DNA from: Pocillopora damicornis
Lineage: Eukaryota
NCBI RefSeq assembly: GCF_003704095.1
Contig: NW_020846727.1
Coordinates: 372,001-436,000 of the forward strand
Direction: 5' to 3'
Length of the DNA: 64,000 nt
The translations under genes were made by a program, and so were the position numbers. Below the pieces are notes generated by a model. That model was not told where the DNA came from. It searched no databases and was given only the letters and a program-made list of their open reading frames with translations. Of the stretch, positions 29,701 through 48,900 are shown piece by piece. Position 1 is the first letter of the stretch; every line of letters begins with the position of its first letter.

Positions 29701-32700
29701 TGTTATTGGTTACAGGATAACTTTGCTATTTTCTCCCTGAAATATGCATCCGGCAACGACGCTGAGGAGACGCCATCCTTCAGTTTACATCAGAGTTTAG
29801 TTGGGGTTAAAATGAATGTCAAGGAAAGTGTTATGTAAGTATCTCTATTCACTGCTTAGCTATAAAGTGGGCGCACGTTGATAGAAACTTTGACCTTCCA
29901 CAACTCTTCAACAAATAGAAGGCATTTTCCCGGGTTTTCTGATAAACTAAATGTTCTTATTGAAGGAACACTCAAAAAGCCTATAAACCGTTTACCTCTC
30001 GAATAGTAGTGGTGCAAGTGCAAAATAAAGGCTATTGTGTTTTTACTTATAAGACATCCACTTTGTTTCTGTCATTATTGATACCAAATGTGTACTGCCG
30101 GAAGGAAATTAATTTACACCCCTGCGCAGGGGCTCTCTGAGTACGTCCCGTTCACTGAGTACATTTATTATTTGGTCCTGCAAAACCACCGAACTTATTT
30201 AAACTGATGACATTTCAAACACAACTGTCTATTTCCGTAGTTTATCACATTTGTCCGTGGAGAGAAATGTCTGGCATCATGTCTGTGCCTCATGGAGTTC
30301 TCAATTAGGATTCTGGAAAATTTACAAAGATGGAAAGCTCTTCGATTTTGATAGATGGCTTAGCTCCGAACAAGTAATATCTGGTGAGATGTTACCAAAA
30401 GAAATTGTTCTGACATTGTGCCACAGCTGAGTGCGACAGCTGAGTGCCACAGCTGAGTGCCACAGCTGAATCCCAAACTTGGCCTGGATGATACTTAACC
30501 CAGAGGAATTTTTTTTTCTGTTTAAATGGTTATTTTTGAGTCGTCAGATCACGAAATTCTGCCTCGTTAAACACAGAAACCGATGAAGCCAAAAATAGAA
30601 TTTGAACAGGAAAAAAGAGCATGATTAGTGATGAGAGATTTGCCAATCAAAATCGCATAAAAATTTGTAGCTGAAGATGCATGTGTGAAGCTGATGATCA
30701 TTGGAGGTGAACACATACTTCAACTTCAAATTCTCAATAATATGGCTCTTTAATTTGTAATTCCAGGGTCAGGAGTTACAACTATAGAATTCCAACAAGG
30801 CAATCAAACGTTCTCATCAAGATTGACTGGTGTCAATATGTGGGACCATAATCTAGGAGTGGAGGAAGTATATCGTCTTTCTCTTGGATGTGGACAAGAA
30901 TCAGGAAATATTTTGCGGTGGTTTGATCTGAGGAATAAAGTGGATATGACGGAGGACGAAAAGGAGATAAAGGAGCCGGCTTGCTCGTATCGTGATGGTA
31001 CAGGTCAAGTTTTCCTTCCTCAAAGGCGACGGTTGCTACCCCAATTTTCATTAAAATAAATGTGTACTTAGTTTTTGTTTCAGTTTTTAAGTTAGTAATG
31101 GTTCAACTTTCATGAAGTGTAAGTGTTCAGTCTCACTTGTCAAAGCTCACAATCCGCCACAAAATTTTCAAAATACTTCTTAGCAGAAGTTTTATGTACT
31201 CTTTTGGAATGAAGAGAGAACTAGCTCAATGCGGCTGTGTATTTTATTGTGTTAAAAACCAAGACGCGTCAAACATTCAAATACCAAATGTCAAATAAGA
31301 TTATTTGAAATTCAAAATTAAGTCTTCGACGATTTTTTACATAAAGTCGGTATGATTGTGTAAACCAAGTGTCAAACAGAAATAGACCAAGCGGAAAACT
31401 AGAGTTTCTGCAACTGGAATTTTCTGATTTAATACTGATGCCCCTGCGTCTTCTTGCTTTCGCACAGCATTTCATCTTTTTTGCCTTATCAAATACCTAC
31501 TGCTCTAAATGGTAAGAAATTGTTAATGTGCAGTTATGTTTCGTAGATGATGCAAAGTATTTAGTAAAAGCAAATGTTTCTATCAGGTGTTATGGCAATA
31601 GTAAGCCATGGTATTGCAGAAAGGGTTACCTTGGTGAGTCCGTGGAACAATAGATCAGCAGACAAATATGGAAGTTGTCTCAAGTTCAGGTTTCTAATGT
31701 TTGGACCTGGTGCTAAAGGATTGGAGATTCATCAACAACTTGAAGAAAGTCAGTGGCCGATTTGGAAAGATTCTGATAACATGGTGCCGTACTGGCGACA
31801 TGGACAAGTTTCCCTGAGTTCTCTTGCGAGGAGCAAGGTAATACCAAAAAACCAGCACCTCGACTTCCTTTCTCTTTGAAAAATTTTATAGGTTTACTAA
31901 GTGGTTCAATGTCTATTGCATGGTTAGGTTGCTTTGTCAAACCAAGGAAAAATTCAACGTTGGTTATGTTTGGTCAATAAGCAACCCAGGATTCTTCTTA
32001 GATTCTTCTTAAAAGGTCGCTCGCCAAACCGATACCAACCACTGCGATCAACTTGTAAACAACAATTTGCGACCAAGTATTGTGCCGAAAATCTATGCAG
32101 TAGTACTTAGGATAATCTGGGACGGACGACCGTACCTTTTTATCCAAGATATACCCGTATTCAAATTTTAACGAGGGTAGGTTACATGTGTATCCCGGCG
32201 GTACTAGGCAAATTGCAGTATACATTGCACACTGCATCGTCATCGGAGTAAATGTCTATTTTATGACATTACCTTGGACGAAGCATGTAGCAGCTGCGGG
32301 AGTAAGGGTGTATGGGTAGATAATAAAAAAAAAAAATCTTATCTCGAATGACGAAATTCACCGAATTCTTTGCATCTGTATGCAAGGTTATCATTAAAGG
32401 AGACATGGAAAGAGTGCCTGGTTACATAGCTGTCGGAGGACTGTCTTGGGTCGATGGGTATTGTGAATCTCAGCCTGTTGGAGCAGCCAATCAAGGTAAC
32501 ACTCAAGTTCTACTCTTTTTACTGTGAATAGGCATTGGTGTATTATGATGATGTTATTACAAAAGAAGCAACATTTTTAAGTTTGCAAAACATGTTTGGA
32601 CATTATTCAAGTCATCCTTAATTGCAAATGGTCGTTATATAATTCGAATTTACACTTTACAAATATGTCATGGAATTACAACGTAAGCTTAGTGATGTCA

Positions 32701-35700
32701 AAACATGTTTTCAAAGTTAAAAGTGGTTTTTCCTTTATGATTATTATTTTTATTATGCTTATTTTCTTAATGATAGCATTATATCTCTGCAGCATGTAGA
32801 AAAACACTGGTGGCGTCTTCTGGTTTTATCTTATCACCTTACTATCCTGGGTTCTATGCACCTAATTCCAGTTGTAATTGGCTAATAACCGCGCCAGTTA
32901 GTCATGTGATACGTCTTGAGGTACTGGATTTTCAACTGGAGCGTGACCCGCGATGTGCTACTGACCACCTTGAGGTGACTGATGGGAACACAGTAGGTGA
33001 AAAAAACTTGGGAAGATACTGCGGAGATGAAATTCCGAAACTAATGCAGTCCACAAAAAATACACTGCACATAGCGTTCAGGTCGGACATGAGCGTCCAA
33101 CGAACAGGCTTTAAAATACACTATTCATTTAAAGGTTTGTCAGAACACTTTATTATTTTATGGTTATTACAGACACAGTGTCTTTTCCAATTTCGACCTT
33201 TCCTCGCACATTGTGCATATTATTAAAACTCTTCACAAATATGTTTAAAGATAATCAATTAGTTGCTAGGGTCCCATAAGTGAAATCCTGTCAATTATTT
33301 CAGTATCTCATACGTTGAGATTTTATTTTTTTGTTCGTAAACACAGATTGATCGTATAACTACCGCCCATCCCTCTTTTTTTCCTTCTCCACAGTACAAG
33401 CTGAGGATAGTGCATGTAGCAGCAAACGAGGTAATATCTAATGTCATCGGTATAACTTTTTAAGCTGAGTAAAAACTTTGGTTTCTTTGGTTTCATCGGC
33501 TAAGGAAGATGCCTATTTCTCAACTATCTGTAGAGTTCAGTATCTCTGCATTACAGAATGTTTATGTGAAGACTCTTTAATTGCAGATTTCTCCTATCTC
33601 AAATAATAATTGCTTCTAATCCTATTTTATTCACTTCAGATTGCCCATCAGGCTGTTCGTGCTTCCAGACAACTCTCGGAAATTTTTTTGTCCAAGGTTT
33701 TGATCTAAGAACTGTTCCGGGAAACATGCCATCCTACACAAAAGCCTTGTAAGTCTGTCATACTTTTTTGACACATGCGTGAGAAATGTCACAAGTTATT
33801 GCACTAGTAGATTGAAACTGCTGCAAATAAAGCTGGTTGTTTTCATGGAAACATTTCAAATTTCCTCTACCACAAGAATTGTACATAAATTCGTGTTTAA
33901 TAACATTTCAGGCTCTTTGCAAACAACAGAATTAACCTGATTCAGGAGAAAGCTTTTTCAAATTTGCCGCTGTTGGAGTATATGTAAGTCTCTAGATCAT
34001 CTTTTTAATTTTCAGCATCGTTTTCGCAAGTCAAAAAGTTTTTTTGTGGACTTTTGACTCTTTATGGCGATATATTTCGACAAATCTTATCAAAACACGA
34101 TTACATAGATTTGTCAAAGAAGTTCTTATCAGACATTGTAGGGAAAAATTTCCTGACAGGACCACTGTCACTTTTATTAAGTTTGACATCATACCAATGT
34201 TAACAGTTATCATGGAAAATCGTAAAGATCGTGATTAGTCTAGAATAAGTCACAAGTATCTTCTTTTTTATCTTAGAGATCTCAGTAGAAATGTAATTCT
34301 GATGTTAGCTGATTCTTCGTTTCAAGGATGTCAGAATTTAAAAACCATGTAAGTTAAGCGGCTTTGATTTGCGTTACACTTACACCCTATGTAACTAATA
34401 AACATCCCCGCGTTACACAGAGATTTCTTTGTTTCAGCACGTGAAGCTCGCATGTTCGTCCTCAGGAGAAATTGTTATGTGTTTGCAATTTTAGTGTACT
34501 TGGCGTTTAAATCAGTAAATCAAGTGTCCGTTATTTTTACCGCAAGCCTGGTATTGCCAAGCCAGACCCGAACTCTTTGATATACATCGTACATCCCTGT
34601 TAAATCCTGGATGTTTGAGATTACCTTGAAATCGTCAAGTTATGGAAATTTTCTCTAATTCCTTGTTCTTACTTCCTTGTTATAACTCCTCAGAAGACTG
34701 ACTGGAAATTTTGTCAGGAAATTGTCTTTAAATGTCTTTTCTCACCTTCACAATCTAGAAGTCCTGTGAGTATATTTTTTATAAATATTTACAAGAAAAA
34801 GGGAAGAAACCTTTATTACAACAACTATACCTTATATACCTTATATGCAAGATTTCCTCTCAGTGATATCTATTATATTGTATTTCTTCAAGTATAACAT
34901 GCACAGCTGCTACTTATTTGCATTTTACTGTTTGCTAGTACGTACGTACGTACGTACGTACGACACTTTTTTCCAATTCTCCTTATCTGTTTTTTCTATG
35001 ATAGAATGCTTTTAATGTTAACCTCGTAAAAATTTCTTGCGGAAAAACCAAGCAATAATTGTCAACATAATATTTTTGAAAATTTATCATGAATCACAGA
35101 GATCTTGGAGAGAACCTCTTAACTGTGATCCCAGAGGGAACATTTTCTCACTTGCTCAATCTTCGCGTGGTGTGAGTACAATTACTAATCATAAAATATT
35201 GCTTAATAGCATAAGAATACTGATTGTCAGTTCATATTGTCATTAAACGGCTAGATCAGAGCATCTGAATATTGAAAACATTAAAGTGTATCAACGTAGT
35301 TTTTAGTCTTCATTACCATCTTCCCTCCATCTGTTCGAGGATATTAGACAGTTTTAGATACAAGTTGTTTCCTTATGAGATGAGAGTAACGATTTGTCGC
35401 TGAATATCCCCAGTTTAAAACTTTTTACTTGGTCCTATAGATCTACCTGAATTCAGTTGCTATATTTTGCCAAGCAAACACGTGTTTTTAATTTCTCAAC
35501 AGAAGTTTGAGGTCTAATGAAATAAGGTCTCTGGAGATGAAAATGTTTAGCCAGCGGAGTAATTTAACATATCTGTAAGTTTCTTCTGATCGTTTACCAA
35601 TTTATCTTCACCCTAATTCTTTCCAGAAGCCTTTTGCGAAGTCATTATTAGGTTGCATAGTTCATTGTCCTATTTCATATCATCGTCATTATTCGCTTCG

Positions 35701-38700
35701 ATTCGTTCAAAAAATGCGATCAAAAATGTATGATTGATCGAACGATCTGTGAGAGTGCGCTGTTTCATCAAATCAAACTCGGTGACTTTGGTGTGCACAT
35801 TTCCTCATATCAATTTGATGACCACTCAGTTAAGCGACCACTCTGTAGACAACCTCTCGTTGTCATTTCTGGGGTGACTGCACCACCTTTGTGGTAAAAC
35901 GTTTAACAAACTTCTTAGGGGAAAATTCTCCAGAAAAACCGTACCTCTGGGGAAGCATTTATTTGTATAGCTCAGATGGCTTAATTCCCTCTTAGGAAAA
36001 TTTCCCTTGTGTCGTGCATCTGGGAAGCGACCATGTACGAGATCATGCGAAATACGTGTACAATACATCCGTATTTTTAACTTTTGGCAAAGTAACGTTT
36101 AAGATTCTTAGCAATTTGACCACCAACATATTTTAAAGTTCAAACATATAAGCAGTTCAACCATTAGATATTTTTTCTCATCAGATATCTTCAGGATAAC
36201 TTGATTGAAGTAATTCCGGACAAATTATTCAACAATCTTGGAAACCTAAAAGTTCTGTAAGTATCTTTTAACATTGACATACTTCTCATCTCTCATCTTA
36301 TGAGGATTCTCACTAGTGATGTTGTTAAGTAATGGTAATAGGACTGAGTGGAGTCCAATTCGGTCTGTAATCATACGAGTGCTAACAAAATCGGTCGACC
36401 GCGCAGCAGGAGTCCGATTTGTTTATCACCCGTATCATTACAAACCGAATTGGACGACATATCCTCTCTTTCTCCATTTCTTTGTTCTTCCACATACTTT
36501 CGTATTTAAAAGGGAGTAGCAAATGACCTGATTGTGCATTTATATGCAAGTGTAGTCAAATCTTGAAACTATTTCCATTCTTTGTCTTAGCTACCTGAAC
36601 AACAATAAGATAAAAAGGATATCAATGCACACCTTTGAGGGATTAATGTCATTACACACTCTGTGAGTATATGTGTGTGTACCTTGTCTCTTTCACGCTT
36701 TTGCAAGCTTATTAATACCGTAAGGTTACTCATGAAAGCGTAGAAATGAGAATTGGTGGGATTTAAATAGAACTACCCTCATTGTGACTTTTAAGGCTTT
36801 ACCACGATCACCAACGTTTTTATTTTTTACCTCAATCCGCAGTCTGCGTAAATATCAGGGGGAAAAAACATTTTTGTCATCATGGCTCACTAACCTTTTT
36901 TGCACACGTGAGCCATTCGACTTTGCATTATCTCAAAATATCTAAGAACAGAATGTTTTCGTCGGGATAATTCATCACGTCGGCGATTGACGGTATTCTT
37001 CTCTTGTCATATGATTCAGGTATCTAGACAATAACAGGATAGTGGACCTCCCTGCTGAAACTTTTCATGCTTTGGGCAGTTTACGAAAACTGTAAGTGAT
37101 GTTAAAAAAACACATTTATCCCTCAGTTATATAATCAGAAAACTCAACAAAACTTTGATGACCTTGGCGCATCCTCGCCGATTCAACGGCTTGCGTATAT
37201 TTTACCCACTCCTCGAAGGGTTCATTATTTCCCAAGGAGTAAATAACAGAAGGAGTCCGTTTTATTTTTGTTGGTAGTTTTATGATGAGACCATGTATCG
37301 ATTTTTTCTCATAAGACAGCTCCAGAAGAGAATCACATGATCGCATCAGGGCCGTTCATACGAGAAAAATATCTGTGGCTGACATTAGATGCAAACCCTT
37401 CCGTCTGACCGATACATTTCCACTTTATTTTCCTCTCGCAAAAGGCCCTAGTGACTCTCTCTGGACTCAATTTACTTCCATTCAGCCTTTGAATAACGAA
37501 CGATAATGCAGTCTTCAGAGTCATAAACAAATTTTCTGGCTAATCAAATGAACTTTACTCTGTCACATTTCTAGTTACGTTATATGATAACTAAAAATCG
37601 AGACCAAACAGCTTACAACGATAAATATAACAGTTTTGTGCTGACAGAATGACAAAAATATGCTTCTACTGCCAATGATAACCCCCCAACGTCAGAACGG
37701 CTAGTTTTTATTAATAGGTGATATCATTATGGGGGTAGGTGATATTATTATGGGGGAAGCCTGCAGACTTGCAATGAAGACAAATACTGCTTTCTTTCAG
37801 CACCATGGATCATTTCACCCACTGCTGTTATGCTGTTACTACAATTCCTCAATTACAGTGTGATGCTCCTGCCGATGGTTTCTCAAGCTGTGATGACCTC
37901 ATGAAAAATAAAACTCTCCAGATATTCATATGGATTCTTGGAATCTCAGCATTCGCAGGGAATTTGATTGTGGTTCTTTGGAGATGTTTCTTGAAAGAAG
38001 ATAATCGCGTTCACTCATTCCTGCTAACAAATTTAGCGATATCTGATTTTCTTATGGGGATATACTTATTAATAATCGCCATTAAAGACACTCAGTGGCA
38101 GGGAGTGTATTTCAAACATGACTTATCCTGGAGGACAGGTAAACTGTGTCAGTTCGCCGGCGTGTTATCCATGGTTTCAAGTGAGGTGTCTGTGGCAATG
38201 TTGACAATTATCACAGCCGACCGACTCATATGCATAGTATTTTCATTCAGATTCAGGAAGCTTTCTTTCAAGCGTGCATGTTTTTTGTGCACAGTTGTGT
38301 GGCTCTTAGGAATCACGATATCCACAGTGCCACTGATGGGAATTGATTATTTTAATGACACGAAAAAAGGTGTAGGTTTTTATGGTCGTTCAGCCGTGTG
38401 CCTTCCTCTCCAGTTGTCATCTGACCGACCAGCAGGTTGGGAGTATTCTGTGTCTTTCTTCATCGCCTTTAATTTCGTGGCTTTCATGTTTATGCTTGTT
38501 TCTTACATTGCTATGTTCGTTAAGGCAAAGAAAATTGGCGGAGCCGTCAGATCGACCAACGTTAGAAACGAGACTGCTATGGCGACAAAAATGATGTTCA
38601 TAATCCTCACAGACTTTTTCTGCTGGATACCAGTCATCATAATCGGAATATTATCTTTAACAGGAAGACTGTATGATCCAAAGCAGCTTGTATATGTTTG

Positions 38701-41700
38701 GATAGCAGTTTTTGTTCTTCCTGTGAATTCCTCCATCAATCCTCTTCTTTACACATTTTCTACAACCGCCTCCAGGAAAAAGTTGAAAACTCTGACGGGA
38801 ACGATGAGCTCATTTATAAGAAGAACTCATTCTTCAGGTGAGGCGATTTCATGAATTCAAACGACTGTTTTCTGTTATCGTTTTCTTCATCTCAATGTTC
38901 TGTGATCATATGGAAACGTTTGGGGATTTAGTGAACTTAGATCGAAATAAAGATTATTTCATTGTTTCGTGTTTTTGGTTAATAGCGTCCTCCCTGGTGA
39001 CGAAATCGTGAAGTTAAGGGACGAACTTTCTTTTCGATAAAAGAAAGTTTATCGGAAAACTCAGCTATGAACTTTAGGGTTAACTCAAATATCCCTATCA
39101 AGCACCCATATGAAGAAAAGAAAAACGCCTTTTGTTGAGAAAATCATCCTGAATTGTGTAGACTACAGCCTGACAGTGGTTCACTTCAGTAGCAGATATG
39201 CACGATGAAAGGGTTTTTTTTCAGTGTTAATGCTAAGTTTGATTGGACTATAAACGATTGAATGGGTTAATGTAGATCGGAATTTGGAGATTTTCGCGAA
39301 ATTTACTTTCGTTTGACACGAAAAACACGTCTCCTATTTTCGAGAAATAGAGTTATGTAAAAATGAGTTACATTGCATTACTTCACTTTTTATATGTCCA
39401 GACTTCTTACACAAAGTCTTGGTCTGGTTTCCGGAAAAAAATCTAATCGATTTTAACACGGTGCTATTGGAATCAAATAGCAGCAAAATACATATACAGT
39501 TGAGTTATGATTAAAAATTTAAACTTCATAATAATCCTTTCTACAGGAGGACGAGGAAGATTAGATACACACCTTGATATAACATTGTCAACCGTGACTC
39601 CTAACTTGCCTGACAGAAAAACAGCCATTGGAAAGACTGACGTGAAGATTATTGAATTTTGTGACATATTTAATGACTGCAGCTCCAATCAGTCTATGGT
39701 AAGTATTTAACCTGACATATCCACAGCCAAGTGAACGCATATTTGTATTTGTGAGAGCCTTGCCAGCTTGTTCTCCTAACAACAGATTTATACCCCATTC
39801 ACACCAAAGCTTGGTCTCTCAAAGTCCAACCCTACGTCCCCGTCTTGAGAGACTGGGGCGCAGCCAATCCTCTGTGTAGTGGATACAGTGGTAAGGTAAG
39901 GTAAACTTTATTTTACCATGGTGGCCCAATGAGCCGTAAGGCTGATATCCAGAGCGCCCCTGGAGTAAAAGGAATAGTAATTTAAAAATAGAGGATGTAA
40001 TAATTTAAAAATACAAAATGTTAAAAATTGTGAGTATTCATCAAAAATTTAAAGGAAGAAAGTGACTCCGCGTTCTGAGTATAACGAAGCAACAAATTAA
40101 AAAGGGCTGTGCCCAAATATTTAAAAGTTCGTTTCCCAAGGCTTAGGTTTGGTTTGGGCATCTTCTGCGAGTGTCATAGCTATGTACATTGTAGTCTCTA
40201 ACAAAATAGGTACATAAATACTGAGGTACTAGCTTATTTAAGCATTTATAAACTAAAACACATTTGTGTCTTTTCCGTTTCATTTCTAACTCAGCCACCC
40301 TAAAACATTAAAAGTGTCTTTAGTGGAGTCACACCTAAAAACTATGCAAGCAGCACGATTTTTTAACCGTTCAAGGGTTTTGCTGGGGGTGGATGACAGT
40401 TCACCTCATGTAGTGTTGGTATAACACAGGATTAGCTCGATAAGGGTATTATAGGCGCACATCGCTGCCTTAAGAGTAAGGCAAGGTCTTATCCATGCTA
40501 AAAGTCCCAAACGCTTGTTGACTTTGTTACAAATAGAGTCGGTATGCTCTTTTCAGTGAAGCTGTTCATCGAGACCTCAAGATAATCGATATATGTCCTT
40601 GCCTTGGATCTGCAGAATAAAGTCTGATGAGTTTTGCAATAGTTGCTTTGTTCCAAAGAGTAGGCCTTTCGCTTTGATCAAATTAGTCTTAGTATTAGTC
40701 TGCTTCTCATCAACCACTGGTCGACTCGTTTGAGGTCTTGTAGATTTTCTCTGATGATGTTGATATCGAACCCAGTATAATAGATCACTTCGTCATCGGC
40801 ATACATACTTATCGCCGAGTGTAGCAAACATTGAAGGAGGTCGTTTATGTATATCACAAATGGCAATGATTCCAGTAAGAAAACTTGAGGAACGCCGAAG
40901 TCTAGTGGATTACAGTAGGATTGATTAATTCCAGAACAAGCGACTTGAGAGGAAAAGGTTGCCTATTAGTCAAGGGATGACGCAGCGCAGACAGAGCAGA
41001 CTGGACCCTATGCAGTCGACACCTTTTCTCTCTCCTAAGTCCACGTTCACATTCGGAACTTGGAATGTAAGAACTATGTTCTAACGAGAAAGGACAATTA
41101 TTGTTGTAAATGAAATGAAGAGATACGGTCTGTCAATTCTTGGACTTCGTAAAACAAGATGAACATCATGTAGGGAAGTGAAAATGGCAGATGGCACTAC
41201 CATCCTACACTCAAGGAACCAAGACGACGGAGCTCCTGACACGAAAGGCGTTGCCTTCATGATAACACTATATGCGTAAAGCCATGATCTCTTCGGAACC
41301 AATCATCTCAAGACGTATTACAGCCTACTTCAGGACCACACACAAGAAGATAAGATCATGGATAATACAATGCTATGTACCAAACAAATGGTGCCGAGGA
41401 TGACGATAAGGACAACTTGTACAACTTACTGAGGCAGGTGATCAGCAAGTCAGAAGAGAAGGAAATGACGACGCCGGTTATGGAAGTAGCAGCAGAGGAC
41501 AGGTGAACAGGCGATGGGCAGTGTGGGATATGAACAAGAATGGAGAACGATTATCTGATTTCTGTGCTGATTTCGGGAGGGTAATAGGGGGAGAATTTTT
41601 CCCCTCAAAAGCGCACAAACTCACTTAGGTCTCACCTAACAACACCGCAGAGAACCAAATCGCAAATGTGGAAGTGTGGGAGGAAGAACATCTGCCTCAG

Positions 41701-44700
41701 GAATGGTATAGAAGCTACATCGCGAAGCTCTACAAGAAAGGCAATCTCCGGGACTGTAAAAACCATCAAGGGATGTCACTGATGTTAGTAACTAGAAAGA
41801 TATTTAACCGAATCATGTTATTGCGACTCCAAGAAGCAGGTGATGCCAAACTACGAGATAAGCAGGCTTGATTTAGGAGAGGAAGATCTTGGACTGACCA
41901 AATAGCTACATTACGACATTACGTATTATCATCGAGCTGTCAATCGGATAGAATACACCGCTATAAATTAACAACAATGACTTTGAAAATGCTTTCGATG
42001 GCCTCGACAGAAAATCTATTTGGCGACTAACGAAACATTACGAGGGAATCAACTCATGGAAAGAGTAACGGTATCCAATGGACACTGTGGCAACAAACAG
42101 ACAAAGTCGACTTTGCCGACGATATTGCTCTTCTCTCCAGTACCAAATAACAAATGCGAGACAAGACAACTCTTTCAAAAAATGCCAGCAAGCTAGGACT
42201 ACGACCAAATGTAATGAAAACCCAGATATTGAAGAGCAACTGCAACAACAAGACATCTATCACTATCAGGGACAACACCTAGGAGGATTCTTCATCCCTT
42301 GTCTAAATTGAGATTACTGTGAGCAGATTTGGTGGGACAGACAGGACAACAAATGCTAGGATAGTTTTAACATTTTGAAGAAGTATGTTCAGCCCACACA
42401 ATGAGAAGTAAACCCAAACTGAGAATATTTAATTCAAATGTGGAGTCTGTTCTGCCCTACGGGTCCGAAACCTGGAGAGCGGCGAAGAAATCCACCAAAA
42501 ATTACAGAAATTCGTCAATCATTGTCTCAGACGCATCTTAAAAGTCAGATGGTCAGATAGGATATCCAATTAAGTGCTGGGGGAAAGAACAGGAAAATAG
42601 CCAATTGAAAATCAGATTTTCAAGAAAAAATGTAAATGGAGGGTATACCCTAAGGGAGTATGCAAACAACATCACGAGGCAAGCAGTAAAATGGAACCCA
42701 CTAGGAAAATAGGTCGCCCCAAGATCACATTTACAAGAGATATAGAGTCAGACATGAAAAGATAGAACTACATATGGCACCAGCTGGAAACGGCAGCCTC
42801 TGACAGAAGTAGATGGAGGACGTAAATCATCAATGGCCTACGCTCCACCAAGCCAAAAGTTAAACTAAAAGCACCAAAGTTTGGAAATGTTTTAAATCTG
42901 TTTCTTGAACTCGGCTTAATTTTTTTTTGACAAAAGCTGCTTAAACCAAGTTTGTTGACTTCAAATTCAAGTTAGTGTCTATTTGAAACCTCTGAAAAAT
43001 TCAGTTCTCTCTTTTTGATTTTCATTCATCTAAACCTGGTTTAACTAGACATGTTCTGCTGGTGTAAATGGGGTTTTAAAATCCTGTAAGTTACATTTAG
43101 TCACAAACCCTCAGGTTCCAAGTTTTCCGGCTACCTTAAGTCTTAGCCGACTGCACTTTCATATGACTCACATGTATGCCATCAGATATTGGTTAGAACT
43201 AACCAGTTATATAACCTTTGTGCACAGGGATATGCTACTTGCTGGGTGGAAAAAGACAGTTTGGAAATGTGCCTTTTGAAGTACTTTACAAGATCCAAAG
43301 AGAAAGACTGGAAAAACGAAATTGAAATTTTAAAAGAAATAGCTAAAAATGGTGCACATGACAACCTGATTGCATTCCGCTGGCATTCAGAAGGTAAGTC
43401 CATTTTGATATCATTATTAGCTCGTTGGAAATCAAATAAGGCGATGCAATTGTTGTGCTATTTTTTCATTTCAGTGTGTGATGTCAACATTGGTTTTCAA
43501 AAGACCAAGCTACCATCCATAAAGAACGCTAGCTTGTAAGTAGTAAATTAAACTGCCCAAAACTTTTCTAAATTGTTTGAAACTATAATTCCTCGAAACA
43601 AACCAAAAATCGAAAAAAGAAAATCAAAAGAAAAAGAAAATAGGTCCTTTTTGAAATTAAGAAGTTAATATGCTAGGAGCTATCGCTGAGCCAAAAATGT
43701 CTTAAAGCTGGCTTTAGCTATTTCAAAATTAACAGGTTTTTCTTTGTAGGTTAATTTGCTTTGCCTTTGTGTCAAGCACCTCATTGAGCGATTTCCTTGA
43801 CGAAGGTGTTGGAAGATGTGAACCAACAATTACCCAACTACTGATTGTACTTTTGGATGTTGTCAAGGCTGTTGAACACCTTCACAAAACAGGAATATGT
43901 CATAATAATATTTCTCCGTCCAACGTACTCGTTTCCTTCAATGAAGGGGTAAGCTTACCTTAGCTACGCAAGTCGATAAGATACAAGCTGAAGTTGATTC
44001 GATACACCTAGAAAGTTGATTCGATACACCTAGAAAGTCCTTTGGATACAACTACAGTCATTTCGATACAATTTAGTAACGGAGTAATTGGATTTTTCAT
44101 GAGACTTCCGTTTTGTTTACACCGTAATGAAGCGGTATCAGTATGCCAATCTGCTCATTTCTTAGAAACCTACTTAATAGTAACCCATACTCATTTAACA
44201 CTGTTCATATCACGGCTCTAAATGATTTGACGGGTTGGCGAGCGGCCTCTGCCTCTGATTGCCTCAATGAGCACATTTGATCAATAAATTCATCCGTCAT
44301 GCATTTCCATACCTGAGAGATGATGTATTCAGTGAATGACACAGATATAATCGGAGGAAGAAACCTTCGAGTGCTCCCAATAGGAGTGGAACCAAGGACC
44401 ATCTGGTTGGTTCTTCAGATGCTCTACCACTGAACTATAGGAGACTCATGGCAGGCTAAGCCGTTTAGCTAAGTCCATGGTGACGAACTTACTGTCCACT
44501 GCTAGAATGGGAATGTTAAATGTAATGCTTTTGCGCAATGATGATGAAAATAGAATTGGTAAATGTTAAGCTTAGGTCTCTTTACAAGCACTAGACACTT
44601 CTCACGTTGTCTTAACGCAAACTTCCTCTGACTTTTAGGTTCGACCAGTGAAAGGAGTACTTGGAAACTTTGGACGAGCCTTTTTGCTTAAACAAAATGA

Positions 44701-44968
44701 CAACTCTTCCTTTTTGCGCCAAGAAGATCTTCGACAATTTCGCAAATTGATGGAAACAGTTGTTGGTTACAGCAATTCTGCACGGAAAACAAATGAGGTA
44801 AGTGTAGCAGTGAATAAACAAAGAATCGAAAGTATCTCATTGTTGATGGAAAAATGTTCTCACTCTTCATTGGGGAATTGTAGATCAAGGAGATTCTTGC
44901 ACTGTGCAAGGGCAACGAGGACGACACACGAGACGCCACACATATCCGGGAAACACTTCAAAGAATAA
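5307..44968 (+). CDS. Giant multi-exon LGR type-C (RXFP/GRL101-like) GPCR with mosaic ectodomain and C-terminal pseudokinase domain (~56 coding exons, ~3,300 aa)
   Basis: Hand-traced exons with compatible phases: 5307-5385, 5669-5710, 7484-7609, 13137-13393, 14366-14453, 14851-15231, 15680-16093, 16388-16494, 16587-16875, 17757-17947, 18307-18485, 18564-18739, 18948-19034, 19307-19482, 20048-20120, ~20207-20338, 20432-20682, 20780-20888, 21167-21388, 21660-21782, 21936-22013, 22175-22312, 22389-22639, 22789-22888, 23242-23328, 24065-24306, 24713-24812, 25163-25524, 26214-26355, 26453-26649, 27112-27240, 27952-28093, 28645-28950, 29368-29508, 29597-29834, 30241-30383, 30767-30997, 31587-31837, 32387-32495, 32793-33134, 33395-33430, 33640-33748, eight 72-nt LRR exons within 33912-37091, 37801-38837, 39547-39698, 43228-43393, 43475-43535, 43750-43948, 44639-44968. 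No in-frame stop is needed. The first two exons and the exact 3' end are least certain. Confidence 0.8.
7484..14453 (+). CDS. MAM domain 1 (exons 7484-7609, 13137-13393, 14366-14453)
   Basis: NCTFERDLCGWTN..DDLDWIRYRGSSPTKLTGPSRDF / GHYIYI..ARLKSP..QCMTFYYNFYG..VWIKSGHWGDRW / IIVEGVRG..GDAALDQF..GSC match the MAM consensus. A 5.5-kb TE-filled intron splits the domain. Confidence 0.9.
7644..7697 (+). repeat. 27-bp tandem duplication
   Basis: gtaatagataactgtactcgagtgaat x2. Confidence 0.85.
7770..8290 (-). mobile_element. Tandem pair of tRNA-derived SINE-like repeats
   Basis: Two degenerate copies of ..ccaatagg.(c)tcgaacc...gaccttcc(g)atta...gatgct..accact...tgctag.a...gaatgtcgaat.tgatgc. Reverse-complement B-box (GGTTCGA). 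Same family as 11640-12200 and 44330-44572. Confidence 0.65.
8400..9222 (+). mobile_element. Degenerate BEL/Pao LTR-retrotransposon fragments (protease and integrase pieces)
   Basis: FLAFRTVLVVLRNEDRKIKVNALLDEDS resembles the BEL/Pao aspartic protease. 9060-9222 reads, with frameshifts, PGEMSSDNG.NFVAA.K.L and NPPQAPNF.GV (integrase). Confidence 0.7.
10424..11546 (+). mobile_element. Young Gypsy-type LTR retrotransposon with 97-bp LTRs; internal region collapsed into an N gap
   Basis: LTRs 10424-10520 and 11450-11546 (TGTTG...CAACA, 2 mismatches). 5-bp TSD CAGTT at 10419-10423 and 11547-11551. PBS TGGTGGCAGCGGTGGGAT at 10521, PPT AAAAAAGGGGAAA at 11437-11449. Gag start at 10595 and integrase C-terminus LLAYRSTPL..FSPAQLLMGRKLR..TPRSY..VRRNR ending at 11359. 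Confidence 0.95.
11640..12200 (-). mobile_element. Tandem pair of the same SINE-like family, with a 24-bp internal duplication
   Basis: gactcgaacccacgaccttccgatc..ggatgctctacca..gtgacaaacgt.c.gc.tactgc motifs occur twice; tcaaacctaggatcttccaatttg is repeated at 11691-11738. Confidence 0.65.
15680..16093 (+). CDS. C-type lectin-like domain exon
   Basis: CYPGWKAVGSTCLRF..TWDGARAFC..LGGDLA..YVGF..WIWNDG..CGAL..DC....GFICE; single phase 1-1 exon. Confidence 0.9.
17757..18739 (+). CDS. PA14-like domain exons (17757-17947, 18307-18485, 18564-18739)
   Basis: RELWY..DNYGERLTAYLKVPKSGNYTLSLSCGDECELW..VYL....LYALQVYMK....CLSVG..EPI resembles the PA14 pattern (YG.R...Y..P..G.YTF....DD..ELW). Confidence 0.7.
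20432..24812 (+). CDS. Divergent MAM 2, LDL-receptor class A repeats (2 canonical plus 1 degenerate), MAM 3 and MAM 4
   Basis: MAM 2: IESPLL..GLCLRFKF..LIWKLRGHQG..IVVDNITI. LDLa: CSPNDYQCDNGEC..SQRCDNDVNCMDGSDEKGC and C....LSC....CVP...LCNGFDDCSDGKDE. MAM 3: CSFENGFCG..TGPSYDHT..YIYIEAS..ARL..CLQFWYHMFG..GDIAIDDI. MAM 4: CYFDDKICNW..ITSP..CMRFWY..IDIDDV. Confidence 0.9.
23776..23970. mobile_element. ~195-bp MITE-like element
   Basis: Imperfect terminal inverted repeats ttagtatatactaaaa (23776-23791) and ttttagtgaatactaa (23955-23970). Confidence 0.6.
24390..24600 (+). mobile_element. Penelope-like retroelement fragment (RT C-terminal/linker region)
   Basis: ENKYLDRVFSKNNYNEDFI....TTETIPYIRGISENIS...QPFN resembles the E..L..VF..N.Y..FI / TIPY..G.SE.I motif between RT and GIY-YIG. 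Intronic. Confidence 0.65.
25163..28093 (+). CDS. Two F5/8 type C (discoidin) domains
   Basis: Domain 1: PLGMQNGRI..SAITASS..RARL..QWLQVDFG..VATQG..WVTKY..IFDGNFD..AQFVRIYP..CLRVEYYGC. Domain 2: PLGMQNGQIP..RARL..QWLQIDLG..TQGR..ARFLRIHP..LRIEIYGC. Confidence 0.93.
28645..28950 (+). CDS. WSC-like cysteine-rich module exon
   Basis: GCYKD...R......C.......VFSVQNGGQC.....YNRYGKSTQC...GRGGPWANQVY follows the WSC-type GCY.D..Q.G..C..GG..AN.VY pattern; phase 1-1 exon. Confidence 0.75.
29597..30997 (+). CDS. Pentraxin/LamG-like domain (exons 29597-29834, 30241-30383, 30767-30997)
   Basis: AMTVCYWL..WHHVCASWSSQLGFWKIYKDG..LTGVNMWDHNL...EVYRLS..C....GNILRW, including the pentraxin HxCxxW signature. 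Confidence 0.88.
30418..30469 (+). repeat. 13-bp tandem repeat x4 (gtgccacagctga)
   Basis: gtgccacagctga gtgcgacagctga gtgccacagctga gtgccacagctga is directly visible. Confidence 0.9.
32793..33134 (+). CDS. CUB domain exon
   Basis: C..TL..SSGFILSPYYPGFY..NSSCNWLITAP..HVIRL...DFQLE....C..DHLEV.DG.......GRYCG..IP....S..N.L.I.FRSD......GF. Confidence 0.95.
33640..37091 (+). CDS. LRR N-cap plus eight leucine-rich repeats, each on a 72-nt phase-2 exon
   Basis: CPSGCSC cap at 33640-33748. Exons 33912-33983, 34277-34348, 34694-34765, 35100-35171, 35503-35574, 36185-36256, 36591-36662 and 37020-37091 each encode xLxxNxIxxI.xxxFxxLxxLxxL. Confidence 0.93.
34938..34963 (+). repeat. (GTAC)n palindromic microsatellite
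   Basis: gtacgtacgtacgtacgtacgtacg in an LRR intron. Confidence 0.9.
36331..36458. repeat. Palindromic (hairpin) MITE-like repeat
   Basis: gtccaattcggtctgtaatcatacgagtgctaacaaaatcgg pairs imperfectly with ccgatttgtttatcacccgtatcattacaaaccgaattggac around a short loop. Confidence 0.7.
37801..38837 (+). CDS. Hinge plus rhodopsin-class 7TM domain, LGR type C (relaxin receptor/GRL101-like)
   Basis: CCY..QC..P.DGFSSCDDLM hinge, GN in TM1, NLAISDFLMGIYL in TM2, SSEVSV..L..I..DR in TM3, FYGRSAVCLPL in ECL2, TDFFCWIP in TM6 and LPVNSSINPLLYT in TM7. Donor G|gtgagg at 38837. Confidence 0.96.
39547..44968 (+). CDS. Cytoplasmic protein-kinase-like (pseudokinase) domain exons fused to the GPCR
   Basis: Exons 39547-39698, 43228-43393, 43475-43535, 43750-43948 and 44639-44968 give CLLK (beta3), DWKNEIEILKEI (alphaC), HDNLI, SLSDFL, LDVVKAVEHLHKTGICHNNISPSNVLV (catalytic loop), GVLGNFGRA (DFG position), EDLRQF (alphaF position) and ISLLMEKC (alphaH-like). 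Confidence 0.82.
40020..40930 (-). mobile_element. Decayed non-LTR (CR1/L2-like) reverse transcriptase fragment
   Basis: Minus-strand GVPQ..PFVIYINDLLQCL.HS.ISMYADD..IY and downstream HTDSICNKVNKRLGLL.WI, with many stops. Confidence 0.7.
40940..42850 (+). mobile_element. Decayed RTE-like LINE (AP endonuclease and RT remnants)
   Basis: TFGTWNVRTM and KGVAFM in the endonuclease region. VWEEEHLPQEW...IAKLYKKGNLRDCKNH.G, LRDKQA*FRRGRS.TDQI, DFADDIAL and LPYGSETW in the RT region. Frameshifts and internal deletions throughout. Confidence 0.8.
43991..44037 (+). repeat. 22-bp tandem duplication
   Basis: aagttgattcgatacacctaga x2. Confidence 0.85.
44330..44572 (-). mobile_element. SINE-like repeat in a pseudokinase intron
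   Basis: cgagtgctcccaataggagtggaaccaaggacc..gatgctctaccactgaactataggagactc..gtgacgaac..tgctagaatgggaatg, the same family as the copies above. Confidence 0.7.
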
Positions 44969-45978
44969 GTAGCTCCCTAAAGGATAGTGCGAGGTTCTAA
45001 CACAGCCAAGCATCGCAACGACAAAATTGTACCTACAGTTGCATCTAAATGAGAATCTCACAATGCATGCATGTATTAAACATGATTTGTTTTCATGTAA
45101 TGACGTAACTAGTAATATTTCTACAGTCGAAAGGAACCATATACTTTTTTCAACCTTTATACACTATTATGTTGGATTGTAGATTAGTCGCATTTTTTTC
45201 CAGTAATTCCTGTAGTTACACACAGGATACGTGTTTACGCAAGGCAGTCAAAATTATCCAGACAACGCCGATTATTTCACTCTTTTGATCTTAAATACTC
45301 AATTGAGTATGTTACCTAAGAACCCAAGTTTTAAGCAAAATAATAGATCTTGGTTTATTAGATACTGCACAGGGAAGTTTGTTGAGAAGACGTTTAACCT
45401 TTTGACTGATTATTATTATTATCATTATCATTATTATTTTTTTTAGTTGACTTCTGATTGCGCCAAGCCAATCACTGGGTCGAGTCTGTCGACCTCGTTC
45501 TGATTTGTCTGACAAATAAAGGTCTATATCGGACAAATATCTCCGGTTGTGTTGAATGACTTTTCATTCAAAGAGATAATAATAGAACGAATGAAATTTA
45601 TCTCCGAAAATTCTTTGAGGGGGAAACGAAGAGAGGAGATATCGTAGTTGCGAAATTTACCCATAAAACCTTGATAACCTGGTAAGAAATTACCCGACAC
45701 GACTATGAGGACTAGGTTGTTTAAACCGGGATAATTTACCCTGCATCTTTACCCCAACATCTTTTTTATGACTTCTTCGTCGATTTACATTACATTTTTT
45801 TTTAATAAAAAGATACTATCTTTCTATTTGTGGTATTATCGAGTCATAAAAATTCAACCAAAACTGCGGCTTCAAAATGTACCACACTATAAAACCTTTG
45901 TGTATATTGCAGGAGTCTGTTGCTCTCAGCAGGTTTAAAAACGTTTTTCAGAAAAGTTCCGTGTAAAAATTATTCAAA

Positions 45979-48900
45979 TCAAACAAGTGTACTATTGATA
46001 GGCTGAACTGAATAAACAGTTACTTTTCCTAACTGTGGATTGCAAACAGAATACTTAAAGAATGTCCAACCATGTGCAGCAGCTCCTAAAACACAGGGAA
46101 AACAATCAGAAATGTATTCTCAGGAAAGGTAATGGATTTCATGGTTCAAAATTTACAAATCAAATTTAACAATCAAAAACAGCAGAACTTACCAAACTCG
46201 CCATCCTTGTTGACTACTACCAAGCCCCCACTATACTTTGGGTAATATTTTGCTATTCGTGTAAGAGCTAGTGTTGCTGCTTCTGTTGGACTTTTACCCT
46301 GACGCATGAACTCAACTGCCTGAAAACTGCACCAAGAATAAAAGAAGAAAAAAATCCTCTCAGTTAAGTTGTGCAATTGTTAATTATTAAAGCTTAGACA
46401 AAAAGCGTAATTTCCTTCATTGGGAATAAACTGTTGGCTGATAAGAGCTAGTGGACAATGCTTAGTATGTTCTGGTAACCTAAGGAATAGCGGCCAGTGG
46501 CTGCATCAGTTCTTTCATTTTTATTTGGTTAGATTTTAAATATCAGCAATAATATAAATAGCTGGGTGCCAATATTTTCATACTGTCAACGAGCCCCTCT
46601 CCACAAAAGGTTCATTTATGACCAGGATTTAATCATTAAACCTGAAATACCTCTATTTGCAACCTGGCAAAAGTGGCCTTTTACCTCGGAAGAAATCGCA
46701 TCATGATATCTCCATCGCCTGTTGCAGCAGCACCGCCTACCTCATTATCAACGTATGCTCCAGCTCCAGCAATGGGTGAGTCTCCCACACGCCTGTGCAA
46801 CAAATAGATAAATAAAAAAAAAAGTAGTTTACTGGTAAAGTAAGACAGGAAAAGACTAAACAGCCACAGTTTTCTTGGACAACCATCTTCACTTCTAAGT
46901 GTTGGTCTGTTTAATGAGTTGATAGCAAAGAAAAAATATCAAAAGAAAGAAAAAGGAAAGGGACAATACATTTTCAGAAAAGCACTGGAAACAAACACAT
47001 GAAACTACACACTGCCACATTAAAATGCTTCTAATTACCAGTACTTTGACTCGGCTGTTCTCTTACCCGGGAATCTTGTGGTTTGCTCCATTTGTACTTG
47101 TTCCTGCAGCAATGTTCCCAACTCTGTCCACTACAATCATACCTGAAAAATTAAATATGTTATCTATATTGAGTGGAAAAACACAAAAGTTTTCAGTTAC
47201 TATCTTCCAGACTTGCATATTATTGGTCATTTATAAGCAAAAGGATCAGTCCATCAATACCAGCCCAAGTCAGGTGCAAAAAAGGCTCAATATAGGGATC
47301 TTCTCCTTACCAATTGTATCATGATTTTGCCGCCCAATGTCTGAATGTGAAGTCGGCCTTGAACTTTTCCGTTCCCTGTGGAAACCAATTATTAATTAAT
47401 ACTTAGACAATAAAGCCTATTCTTGCTCTCTGAGACTGTGGTTGACAGACAGAACATGAATTTTCACACCTTTACAGCAACATTCTAAGCTATATATGAA
47501 GGGTCTGGATATCGTAGAACATAGCACTGTTCTGAATGACTGTCATCCAGTTCAACATATACTGTTTGAACAACAGTAGTTCGGTCCCTGCTAAGGTTAA
47601 GTAAAGCTGGTTAAGCAATGAATCTTTCAGTTTGAGTGTGTTGAATTGATAAACTGTAAGCACTGTTGGTGGGTAAGAATAAACTTACCCTGTCACAGGT
47701 TTGTAAGGACCACATGACTGATGAGGATCAGGAACCACGTCCTTATAGCAAAGGAATGATAATCAGTTCTGAACAATAAGCATTTAGTTACTAGGCATCT
47801 CAGTAAGCAATACAGTCCTGACATCCGAAAGAAACTATAATCACATCTTAACTGAAGCCACATAGAGCTCTTCTAGAAATATACCACCTATATAATATGA
47901 ATACAAGATACTATTTCAAATCTCCAGTTGCCCCTGCAGCATGGTTCAAAGTGACATGCAAATGCATTAAAGAAATAAATAAATAAAACAAAGAAAAATA
48001 TTTTACCATGTCAACTTTACCTTCCAAAAGTTGGGTTGGCAATTATTCTTTTCCCAGTCTCTCCACATCTGCCTGAAAGTCATAAAATAGGGTTGTAGAC
48101 AATAAAATTGGCTGATGTAGCACTCATCTAGTTCAGTGTTGTTTTAGCTGACCCATTCCACAGCTCATCAAAGAGCAGCCAAAGTAAAAGAGAGTACAAC
48201 TTAATATGAAGCATGGTGTTAGGTTGTCAAAACAATACAGGACCCAAGATTATAAGTTTAATCAAGAAAATGCAAACCATAGAATGCAGCTTGAACTACT
48301 GACCGACACAAAAAACACAGGATTAATGCTTAACTCTCCAAAAATCTGTTGCATGTAAAAATACCATGGGCATTTGTGAAAATATTTCATCTTAATTATA
48401 TTTTCTCATTATACTTTTACCAATAACAATTACAATTTTTTTAATTGCGTTAAATACATTTCATTATTGTTTATTCATTTCATTACAATTTTTCATTGTT
48501 TTTGCCTACAGAACTGAGTGTTAGAAGCATTGTTCACATGTTATTACTCTCTAGCTTGCATACCATGAGTGGTTAGTGTGCAAGTCTTCATTTGTGAATC
48601 CCATCTGCACTGCAAACTGGGTAGCTTTTAGAAAAAACACAACATATCTATGTTAAATGAATGATTGTCTTGTTTGATGCAGTACATCGTCAATGTCATC
48701 ACTTCAAGATATCCTCTCATTATTTCACAGTGCCATAATTTCCTTACTCCACCATTCCACCTCTAGGAATGGTCTGGATTCTACTTTGTCTCCCAGAATA
48801 TTCCAAACATTTTGACAATTGGGGAGTACCCACCAAAGCAGCCTCTTTGCTAGCTCTTGCAAGAGTCACCAATTTCACCTCATCCCACTTATATGAGCAG

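Follow-up and report, generated by a model that had tools for sequence, protein, structure and literature searches.

A GRL101-like receptor gene of the coral Pocillopora damicornis with a predicted cytoplasmic pseudokinase tail

The stretch of DNA analysed here, called the window throughout, comprises 64 kb of the genome of the coral Pocillopora damicornis (GCF_003704095.1, NW_020846727.1:372001-436000, forward strand), from an assembly of 234.35 Mb in 4393 contigs; positions are counted within it. On its plus strand, at about 7.4-45.0 kb, a comparative exon model, with sequence searches done exon by exon, places a single giant gene for a GRL101-like leucine-rich repeat-containing G-protein-coupled receptor (LGR). 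The predicted domain order is a mosaic ectodomain (MAM, C-type lectin, LDLa, pentraxin, CUB and leucine-rich repeats, LRRs), a seven-transmembrane (7TM) domain encoded by one exon, a linker and a pseudokinase. We consider it likely that all of this is one gene, in which the 7TM exon is spliced from a donor at 38837 onto six further exons that add a 284-residue pseudokinase tail. Comparison with other genomes supports this gene structure and the kinase homology of the tail; the splicing itself and the function discussed below are inferred. An earlier note on this DNA had proposed such a hybrid receptor, joining an LGR-type 7TM domain to a cytoplasmic pseudokinase; splice phases, selection, collinearity of paralogues, the introns of Nematostella and existing gene models all argue for it.

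The 7TM exon (e1; Table 1) encodes the end of the hinge, all seven transmembrane helices, the NPxxY motif and helix 8 (Pfam 7tm_1, E 5.7e-30). Its end had been read as a phase-1 donor at 38837, with which the AG and GT bounds, the frame and the single leftover base agree. If this donor were unused, the 7TM frame would stop five codons on, at 38852-38854 (GEAIS*), giving an ordinary short-tailed receptor. From 37801 to the stop the exons total 1891 nt, which is exactly 630 codons. The chain of phase-matched downstream exons proposed in the earlier note likewise stands in its phases, open frames and AG/GT bounds, except that the exons number six instead of five: the supposed terminal exon consists of 44639-44797 and 44884-45000, separated by an 86-nt GT..AG intron. 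The gene end given as 44968 has to be corrected. The TAA there is a read-through stop, and the spliced form would end at 44998-45000, because the exon 6/7 boundary is shared with an orthologous coral locus (L031) and with Nematostella, and the last-exon peptide is conserved. The donor of exon 6 is GT in the window and GC (GAG|GCAAGT) in L031 (L031:16612) and Nematostella (L036:42682).

Table 1 Features of the window
Feature	Position	Strand	Phase and bounds	Content
Ectodomain exons	7471-37092	+		MAM, C-type lectin, LDLa, MAM/pentraxin, CUB, LRRNT, about 8 LRR exons
LDLa-region match	21175-21399	+		Upstream of LRR block
MAM	31574-31876	+		Pfam; E 5e-6 reported for MAM
CUB	32789-33124 (Pfam match 32810-33223)	+		Pfam E 4e-28
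LRRNT	33630-33749	+		Individually weak, but collinear
About 8 LRR exons	33913-37092	+		24 residues each; individually weak at relaxed E-values, but collinear
7TM exon (e1)	37801-38837	+	AG before, GT after; offset 1, one base left over; phase-1 donor G|GTGAGG	7TM domain
Intron 1	38838-39546	+		709 nt; read-through stop 38852-38854; non-conserved in-frame ATG 39507
Exon 2	39547-39698	+	Phase 1 to 0; AG/GT, open	50-residue cytoplasmic linker
Intron 2	39699-43227	+		3529 nt; swollen by decayed retroelement fragments
Exon 3	43228-43393	+	Phase 0 to 1; AG/GT, open	Putative kinase N-lobe part (beta3 Lys, alphaC Glu, beta4)
Exon 4	43475-43535	+	Phase 1 to 2; same phases in L031, L032 and Nematostella	19-residue beta4-beta5 connector
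Exon 5	43750-43948	+	Phase 2 to 0; AG/GT, open	Hinge, alphaD, alphaE, catalytic loop (HNN for HRD)
Exon 6	44639-44797	+	Phase 0 to 0	NFG (DFG-equivalent), short activation segment, 'DLRQF' helix like alphaF
Exon 7	44884-45000	+	Phase 0 to stop	Final 38 residues and TAA stop 44998-45000
AGA (aspartylglucosaminidase), last exons	46176-47230	-		Asparaginase_2, Pfam E 1.4e-6 and 6.8e-5; convergent neighbour
Runs of N	1617-1716, 10716-10815, 63038-63047			Assembly gaps or masked stretches

The receptor part is readily placed. Its rhodopsin-class 7TM domain has LRRs just N-terminal and an LDLa further upstream, as in GRL101-like LGRs, and the best named relatives of the 7TM exon, among 5974 matches in total, are GRL101 or GRL101-like proteins. 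The gene is collinear with a Nematostella protein from residue 26 (at about 7471) to residue 3173. In tblastn, its ectodomain is collinear with residues 26-2385 of the Nematostella co-orthologue P0003, for which Pfam gives LRR_8 and Ldl_recept_a, and with the Stylophora protein P0287; the exons at 29368-33223 follow the pentaxin-MAM-CUB part of the Nematostella protein.

Orthologous loci were found in two other coral assemblies (L031 and L032/L033), with 7TM identities of 88% and 83%. L031 contains all of exons 2-7 and, like the window, has AGA downstream; exons 2-6 were mapped in L032, a locus in which exon 7 was not detected. The mapped exons of both have the same splice sites and phases as those of the window, the codon across the e1/e2 junction is Gly in all three loci, and the indel that separates exon 2 from its counterparts in L031 and L032 is in frame (three codons). 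The dN/dS comparison of orthologues that had been called for gives values of purifying selection for the pooled tail, 0.29 and 0.22 (L031 and L032). Individual values are 0.36 and 0.30 for exon 2 and 0.20 for exon 3, and the exon 7 peptide, which is 47% identical to that of L031, has a dN/dS of 0.26. The introns are unalignable among the orthologues and differ in length up to 27-fold (709 nt vs 1757 and 437 nt for intron 1; 3529 nt vs 883 and 130 nt for intron 2). The exon chain is thus far beyond chance, since exons, splice sites and phases are conserved in other genomes while introns are not.

Exon 2 bears on the connection between the two halves of the gene. It carries a conserved 'KIIEFCDIF' motif, has its first Met as its last residue, and has motif homologues in the Nematostella and Stylophora proteins and in four paralogues with phase-1 acceptors. 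Its phase-1 acceptor, the purifying selection on it and the absence of an in-frame ATG upstream of it in L032 together identify it as a selected coding exon that needs a phase-1 donor upstream, and e1 supplies one at a distance of 0.4-1.8 kb. The long intron that follows exon 2 in the window contains decayed retroelement pieces on both strands, among them a YADD-type reverse transcriptase fragment at 40681-40866 on the minus strand (RVT_1, weak, E 0.008, with many stops).

The same arrangement recurs within the genome. In at least seven paralogous loci, a 7TM exon of 50-61% identity has exon-3-like and exon-5-like exons, and often an exon-6-like one, after it on its own strand within 0.8-2 kb; these loci lie on C4228 (four full and one partial) and on C2971, C4130 and C2596 (one each). 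Every tail-bearing paralogue has a GT donor at the homologous end of its 7TM exon, and in four a linker exon with an 'LIE..DIF' motif runs from a phase-1 acceptor to a phase-0 donor. Of the 7TM paralogues that have no kinase-like exons, the closest, L030 (C1619:454964-455920), lacks the donor. There the frame stays open for about 35 codons beyond where the donor usually lies, and its last residues, ...DTDL*, look like a PDZ-binding terminus. The copies on C4228 form a tandem or inverted cluster (C4228:236000-527000; L021, L023-L025, L028, L029) of at least seven paralogous receptor copies, some of them broken: L028 has part of a 7TM, L021 has 7TM fragments in inverted orientation, and L023 and L029 have tails only.

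Conservation of the donor bears on a first alternative, which is compatible with a single hybrid gene: that there are two isoforms, most transcripts retaining or terminating in intron 1 to give the short-tailed LGR ending in GEAIS*, with the pseudokinase form regulated or minor. The nearby read-through stop is what such an isoform would need, and Nematostella has at least two annotated isoforms, though these differ elsewhere. Conversely, the read-through residues following a shared Ser-(Ser/Ala)-Gly diverge at once between species, unlike a conserved C-terminus, and the donor is conserved in every tail-bearing copy. We regard a mostly short-tailed output as possible, at about one chance in several.

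A kinase-fold match for the tail, which the earlier note had asked for, was found by Pfam and PDB profiles for exon 5 and by the ESM Atlas for the tail of a Ptychodera relative. Exon 5 alone matches Pkinase (PF00069) with E 3.6e-6 and 27 bits, under the 31.7 cutoff, and PK_Tyr_Ser-Thr (PF07714) with 25.1 bits, over the 23.1 cutoff; these are partial-domain matches to profile positions of about 75-137, which correspond to the hinge, alphaD, alphaE and catalytic loop. The exon-5 profile A1, built from 13 orthologues and paralogues across which H51 and N52 are invariant, matched 1611 PDB kinase chains at E < 1, always at the hinge-to-catalytic-loop position, with GCN2, JAK (JH2 and JH1), KSR1 and TNNI3K at the top (E 8e-8 to 5e-6). 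In exon 3, all 13 orthologues and paralogues of profile A2 share K18 and E31, which the profile places on beta3 and alphaC of JAK2, marginally (E 0.018). In an ESM Atlas features search with the Ptychodera tail, nearly all top matches were kinase clusters (0.95-0.96).

Kinase subdomains in the proper order had been claimed for the whole tail. That order stands firmly for exon 5 and marginally for the Lys/Glu pair of exon 3. Beyond the catalytic loop, exon 6 and the remaining C-lobe are assigned by position, order and alignment with relatives, in which the 'DLRQF(G/R)' motif is alphaF-like and may correspond to alphaF; the protein ends about 60 residues past NFG. Sequence thus supports the N-lobe and the C-lobe's first half, and the remainder of the domain is putative. 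No family member of 1200 residues or fewer was found with a full N-lobe and C-lobe tail, and the Nematostella proteins P0151, P0153 and P0154 do not cover the tail.

The catalytic motifs are degenerate throughout the coral copies. At the HRD position the window reads HNN, the orthologues L031 and L032 HND, and the paralogues HNN, HNE or HNG; at the DFG position the window reads NFG, the orthologues SFG or NFG, and the paralogues GFS or GLS. No coral copy has the DFG Asp, and only the Ptychodera protein reads DFA. A glycine-rich loop was not recognisable in the tail. With HNN in place of HRD, NFG in place of DFG, no such loop to be recognised and an end about 60 residues past the DFG position, the tail is, judged by its sequence, a C-terminally shortened pseudokinase that has no catalytic activity in this species. 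Both orthologues (L031:15161-15358 and L032:14516-14707) keep the catalytic-loop Asp and the downstream Asn (HND..PSN) where the window has HNN at 43750-43948; this suggests that its final loss was recent and specific to one lineage.

Nucleotide binding would still be conceivable, given the invariant Lys/Glu pair and the HND that the orthologues have. One might go further and suppose that the tail is not fully dead, binding nucleotide or catalysing weak atypical phosphotransfer at least in those orthologues that have the catalytic-loop Asp, where the PSN Asn is also intact. The loss of the DFG Asp from all coral copies (NFG, SFG or GFS), the lack of a recognisable glycine-rich loop, the HNN of the window copy and most paralogues, and the shortened C-lobe make such residual activity improbable.

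Gene structure outside corals follows the same plan. The Nematostella gene LOC5517652 (L036) has a phase-1 donor after TM7/helix 8, a linker ending in phase 0 just before 'GY', and tail introns identical in position and phase to those of the coral. A GRL101-like gene of Ptychodera (L034), whose last 7TM exon is likewise followed by a phase-1 donor, shares the exon 4/5 (phase 2) and exon 5/6 (phase 0) boundaries, and in Amphiura the 7TM exon is again followed by a phase-1 donor. An intronless proof of the fusion, with 7TM domain and tail in one exon, was sought; the Strongylocentrotus and Amphiura genes also split them.

The 7TM-plus-tail architecture, which the earlier note had suggested seeking in other invertebrates, is present in database models from three phyla, none with a kinase annotation. 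Gene models in RefSeq or GenBank that join the two parts are Nematostella XP_048584250.1 (3282 aa), a Stylophora 'GRL101' (2767 aa) and Ptychodera XP_070533608.1 (1367 aa); Glandiceps XP_077989864.1 is a short-tailed joined model. No kinase family figures in the precomputed Pfam lists shown for the Nematostella and Stylophora models; the domain lies below or barely at the thresholds. Sequences of 7TM-pseudokinase type are, in short, already in the databases without being labelled as such. Because splice phases are conserved, the exons collinear and the parts joined in gene models, it is strongly implied that 7TM domain and kinase fold reside in one polypeptide.

The minus-strand AGA gene directly beyond the receptor, noted earlier, is confirmed by its Asparaginase_2 exons (Table 1). 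The downstream neighbour in Nematostella (L036:45259-45492) is instead a 6058-residue adhesion GPCR (G-protein-coupled receptor; Calx-beta, EPTP, GPS, 7tm_2), and the AGA neighbourhood is therefore coral-specific.

Several observations weigh against a hybrid receptor. An in-frame ATG lies 13 codons 5' of exon 2 (39507) in the window, with a similar one in L031, so that an internal promoter is possible; two C4228 copies (L023, L029) consist of a tail only, both adjoining N gaps; and the database models that join the parts may have been predicted ab initio. When the 7TM exon and exon 2 were searched against proteins, the only matches were open reading frames from genomic DNA that read into the introns, which is uninformative on splicing. 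On the kinase side, the exon-6 profile (A3) found no kinase in the PDB, only spurious WD40-repeat designs, and the fold predicted for exon 5 from its alignment, two helices consistent with alphaD/alphaE, has a low-confidence pLDDT of 64.

The first two of these observations would suit a tail that is a separate, stand-alone cytosolic pseudokinase gene with a promoter in intron 1, merged with the LGR by prediction programs and co-duplicated with it. The claim in the earlier note that the kinase part has no start of its own holds for L032, which has no upstream ATG, and is qualified by the ATGs of the window and L031. A separate gene would leave unexplained why the strong AG phase-1 acceptor of exon 2 matches a phase-1 donor in the orthologues, in four paralogues and in Nematostella, why the tail-less paralogue has no donor, and why the linkage has been maintained in Cnidaria, Hemichordata and Echinodermata. 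The tail-only copies were rejected as support for it, being uninformative since both abut N gaps. We accordingly give a separate gene little credence. That the tail exons are what a decaying old fusion has left behind, with no functional product, would fit the lost catalytic residues and a domain under Pfam thresholds in most species, but is barely credible given frames open in all copies, dN/dS of 0.22-0.29 while introns are saturated, in-frame indels, and splice sites conserved since the coral-anemone split.

With a single receptor-pseudokinase gene as the preferred reading, we turn to its distribution. A coral-only hidden Markov model (HMM) of exon 5 matched 14 proteins at i-E < 0.01, every match in the C-terminal tail behind the 7TM domain, and matched none of the reversed sequences. 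The proteins come from Nematostella, Stylophora, the hemichordates Ptychodera, Glandiceps and Saccoglossus, the echinoderms Holothuria, Antedon, Anneissia and Amphiura, and one scallop. A broader HMM of the whole tail gave weaker matches in gastropods and bivalves (Haliotis, Patella, Ruditapes, Pecten, Ostrea), in a nemertean and, among chelicerates, in mites and a spider. The shorter bilaterian tails extend about 160-210 residues after NPxxY and keep only the alphaE-catalytic loop-alphaF-like helix part, typically with an 'LH..G..HG' loop. Pfam detects a kinase in a few of these shorter-tailed relatives (Glandiceps, E 2e-5; Antedon, E 0.03), and the ESM Atlas result for the Patella tail is a weak lead only. 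An unannotated C-terminal stub of about 100 residues is found in P0050, P0023, P0022, P0095, P0065, P0054, P0114, P0137 and others, from hemichordates, echinoderms and molluscs; it is homologous to the alphaE-to-catalytic-loop part of the coral tail, often with an 'HG' loop.

The earlier note's description of characterised animal LGRs as short-tailed has to be qualified: in hemichordates, echinoderms and a scallop, GRL101-like receptors that are still uncharacterised have a recognisable remnant of the same kinase-like tail. We lean, by a narrow margin, towards the view that GRL101-type LGRs were ancestrally GPCR-pseudokinase hybrids, the kinase having been fused behind the 7TM domain before the cnidarian-bilaterian split. 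The domain would then plausibly have stayed near whole in anthozoans and at least one hemichordate and been reduced to a C-lobe stub in echinoderms and molluscs. This scenario is plausible, but its basis is transitive similarity. If true, an ancestral pseudokinase would have given a large orphan receptor family, tandemly expanded in corals, an output that is either modulating or independent of G proteins.

As to mechanism, the kinase-like domain appears to retain the beta3 Lys, the alphaC Glu, the alphaD and alphaE helices and the scaffold of the catalytic loop. Activation of the 7TM domain may reposition the pseudokinase, so that the position or oligomeric state of the tail would follow 7TM conformation. 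The tail would most likely be non-catalytic, offering a docking or dimerisation surface for cytosolic partners; alternatively, it may be an allosteric regulator, a brake or an adaptor, of G-protein or arrestin coupling. A role as scaffold or allosteric module is proposed here. Comparable regulators are the kinase-homology domains of receptor guanylyl cyclases, JAK JH2 and the pseudokinase receptor tyrosine kinases. The mosaic ectodomain and the tandem expansion suggest a recognition receptor, and the lectin, pentraxin and MAM domains of the expanded coral copies hint at recognition roles with a bearing on immunity or symbiosis.

LGRs of the GRL101 type are orphan receptors. Their range runs from cnidarians to arthropods and ambulacrarians, and published analyses cover only their ectodomains and 7TM cores. 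The cytoplasmic tail of GRL101 or type C2 LGRs has been regarded as poorly conserved and left unanalysed (PMC4079206), and neither Veenstra's analyses of GRL101 (PMC8286064) nor a starfish study (PMC6267866) mentions a kinase-like tail. Our literature search found no paper combining GRL101 with a pseudokinase, and none tying LGRs or GRL101 to a kinase-like tail. A kinase-derived tail would give these receptors a concrete, testable intracellular module. It would also extend GPCR-kinase-fold fusions into eumetazoans and offer a natural system for asking how a 7TM domain drives a pseudokinase scaffold.

Among known systems, the closest in the 7TM domain are GRL101 and other type C2 LGRs (Lymnaea GRL101 and GRL101-like proteins), which likewise have LDLa and LRRs before a rhodopsin-class 7TM. 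In hemichordates, echinoderms and a scallop, GRL101-like receptors have tails in which the coral exon-5 profile finds its match at the same place. What sets the coral and anemone receptors apart is an added, very large mosaic ectodomain (MAM, lectin, pentraxin, CUB) and a tail that keeps part of the N-lobe, which most bilaterian GRL101-like tails lack.

In architecture, a 7TM domain followed by a C-terminal kinase fold, the receptor resembles the GPCR-bigrams of oomycetes and amoebozoans, the GPCR-TKL/K proteins of choanoflagellates and the GPCR-TK proteins of choanoflagellates and sponges. A 2025 survey found GPCR-kinase-fold fusions only in protists, choanoflagellates and sponges, none of them functionally characterised (PMC12716839). 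Those of protists and sponges have a Pfam-detectable, presumably active kinase or PIPK, and 7TM domains that do not cluster with metazoan LGRs; the coral receptor, by contrast, has a bona fide LGR 7TM domain and a degenerate, truncated kinase domain. Because the catalytic Asp residues are missing and the 7TM domain is of LGR type, unlike the 7TM domains in PMC12716839, we take the coral protein to represent an independent fusion and not a member of the GPCR-bigram, GPCR-TK or GPCR-TKL families.

What the coral tail shares with JAK JH2 and with the kinase-homology domain of receptor guanylyl cyclases is only a logic, namely a catalytically impaired kinase fold on a receptor system that serves regulation or scaffolding, although the exon-5 profile has JAK JH2, with its 'HGN' loop, as one of its best PDB matches. 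Those are complete folds, on single-pass receptors or in cytosolic kinases, and an active catalytic domain follows them, whereas the coral pseudokinase is C-terminally short, is the last domain and is attached to a 7TM domain. RXFP1/2 and LGR4-6 belong to the same LGR superfamily, with an LRR ectodomain (and LDLa in RXFP1/2) and a rhodopsin-type 7TM domain, but in vertebrates they have short unstructured C-terminal tails without a kinase-like domain. LGR4-6 nevertheless provide a precedent for LGRs that act as scaffolds rather than as classical G-protein couplers.

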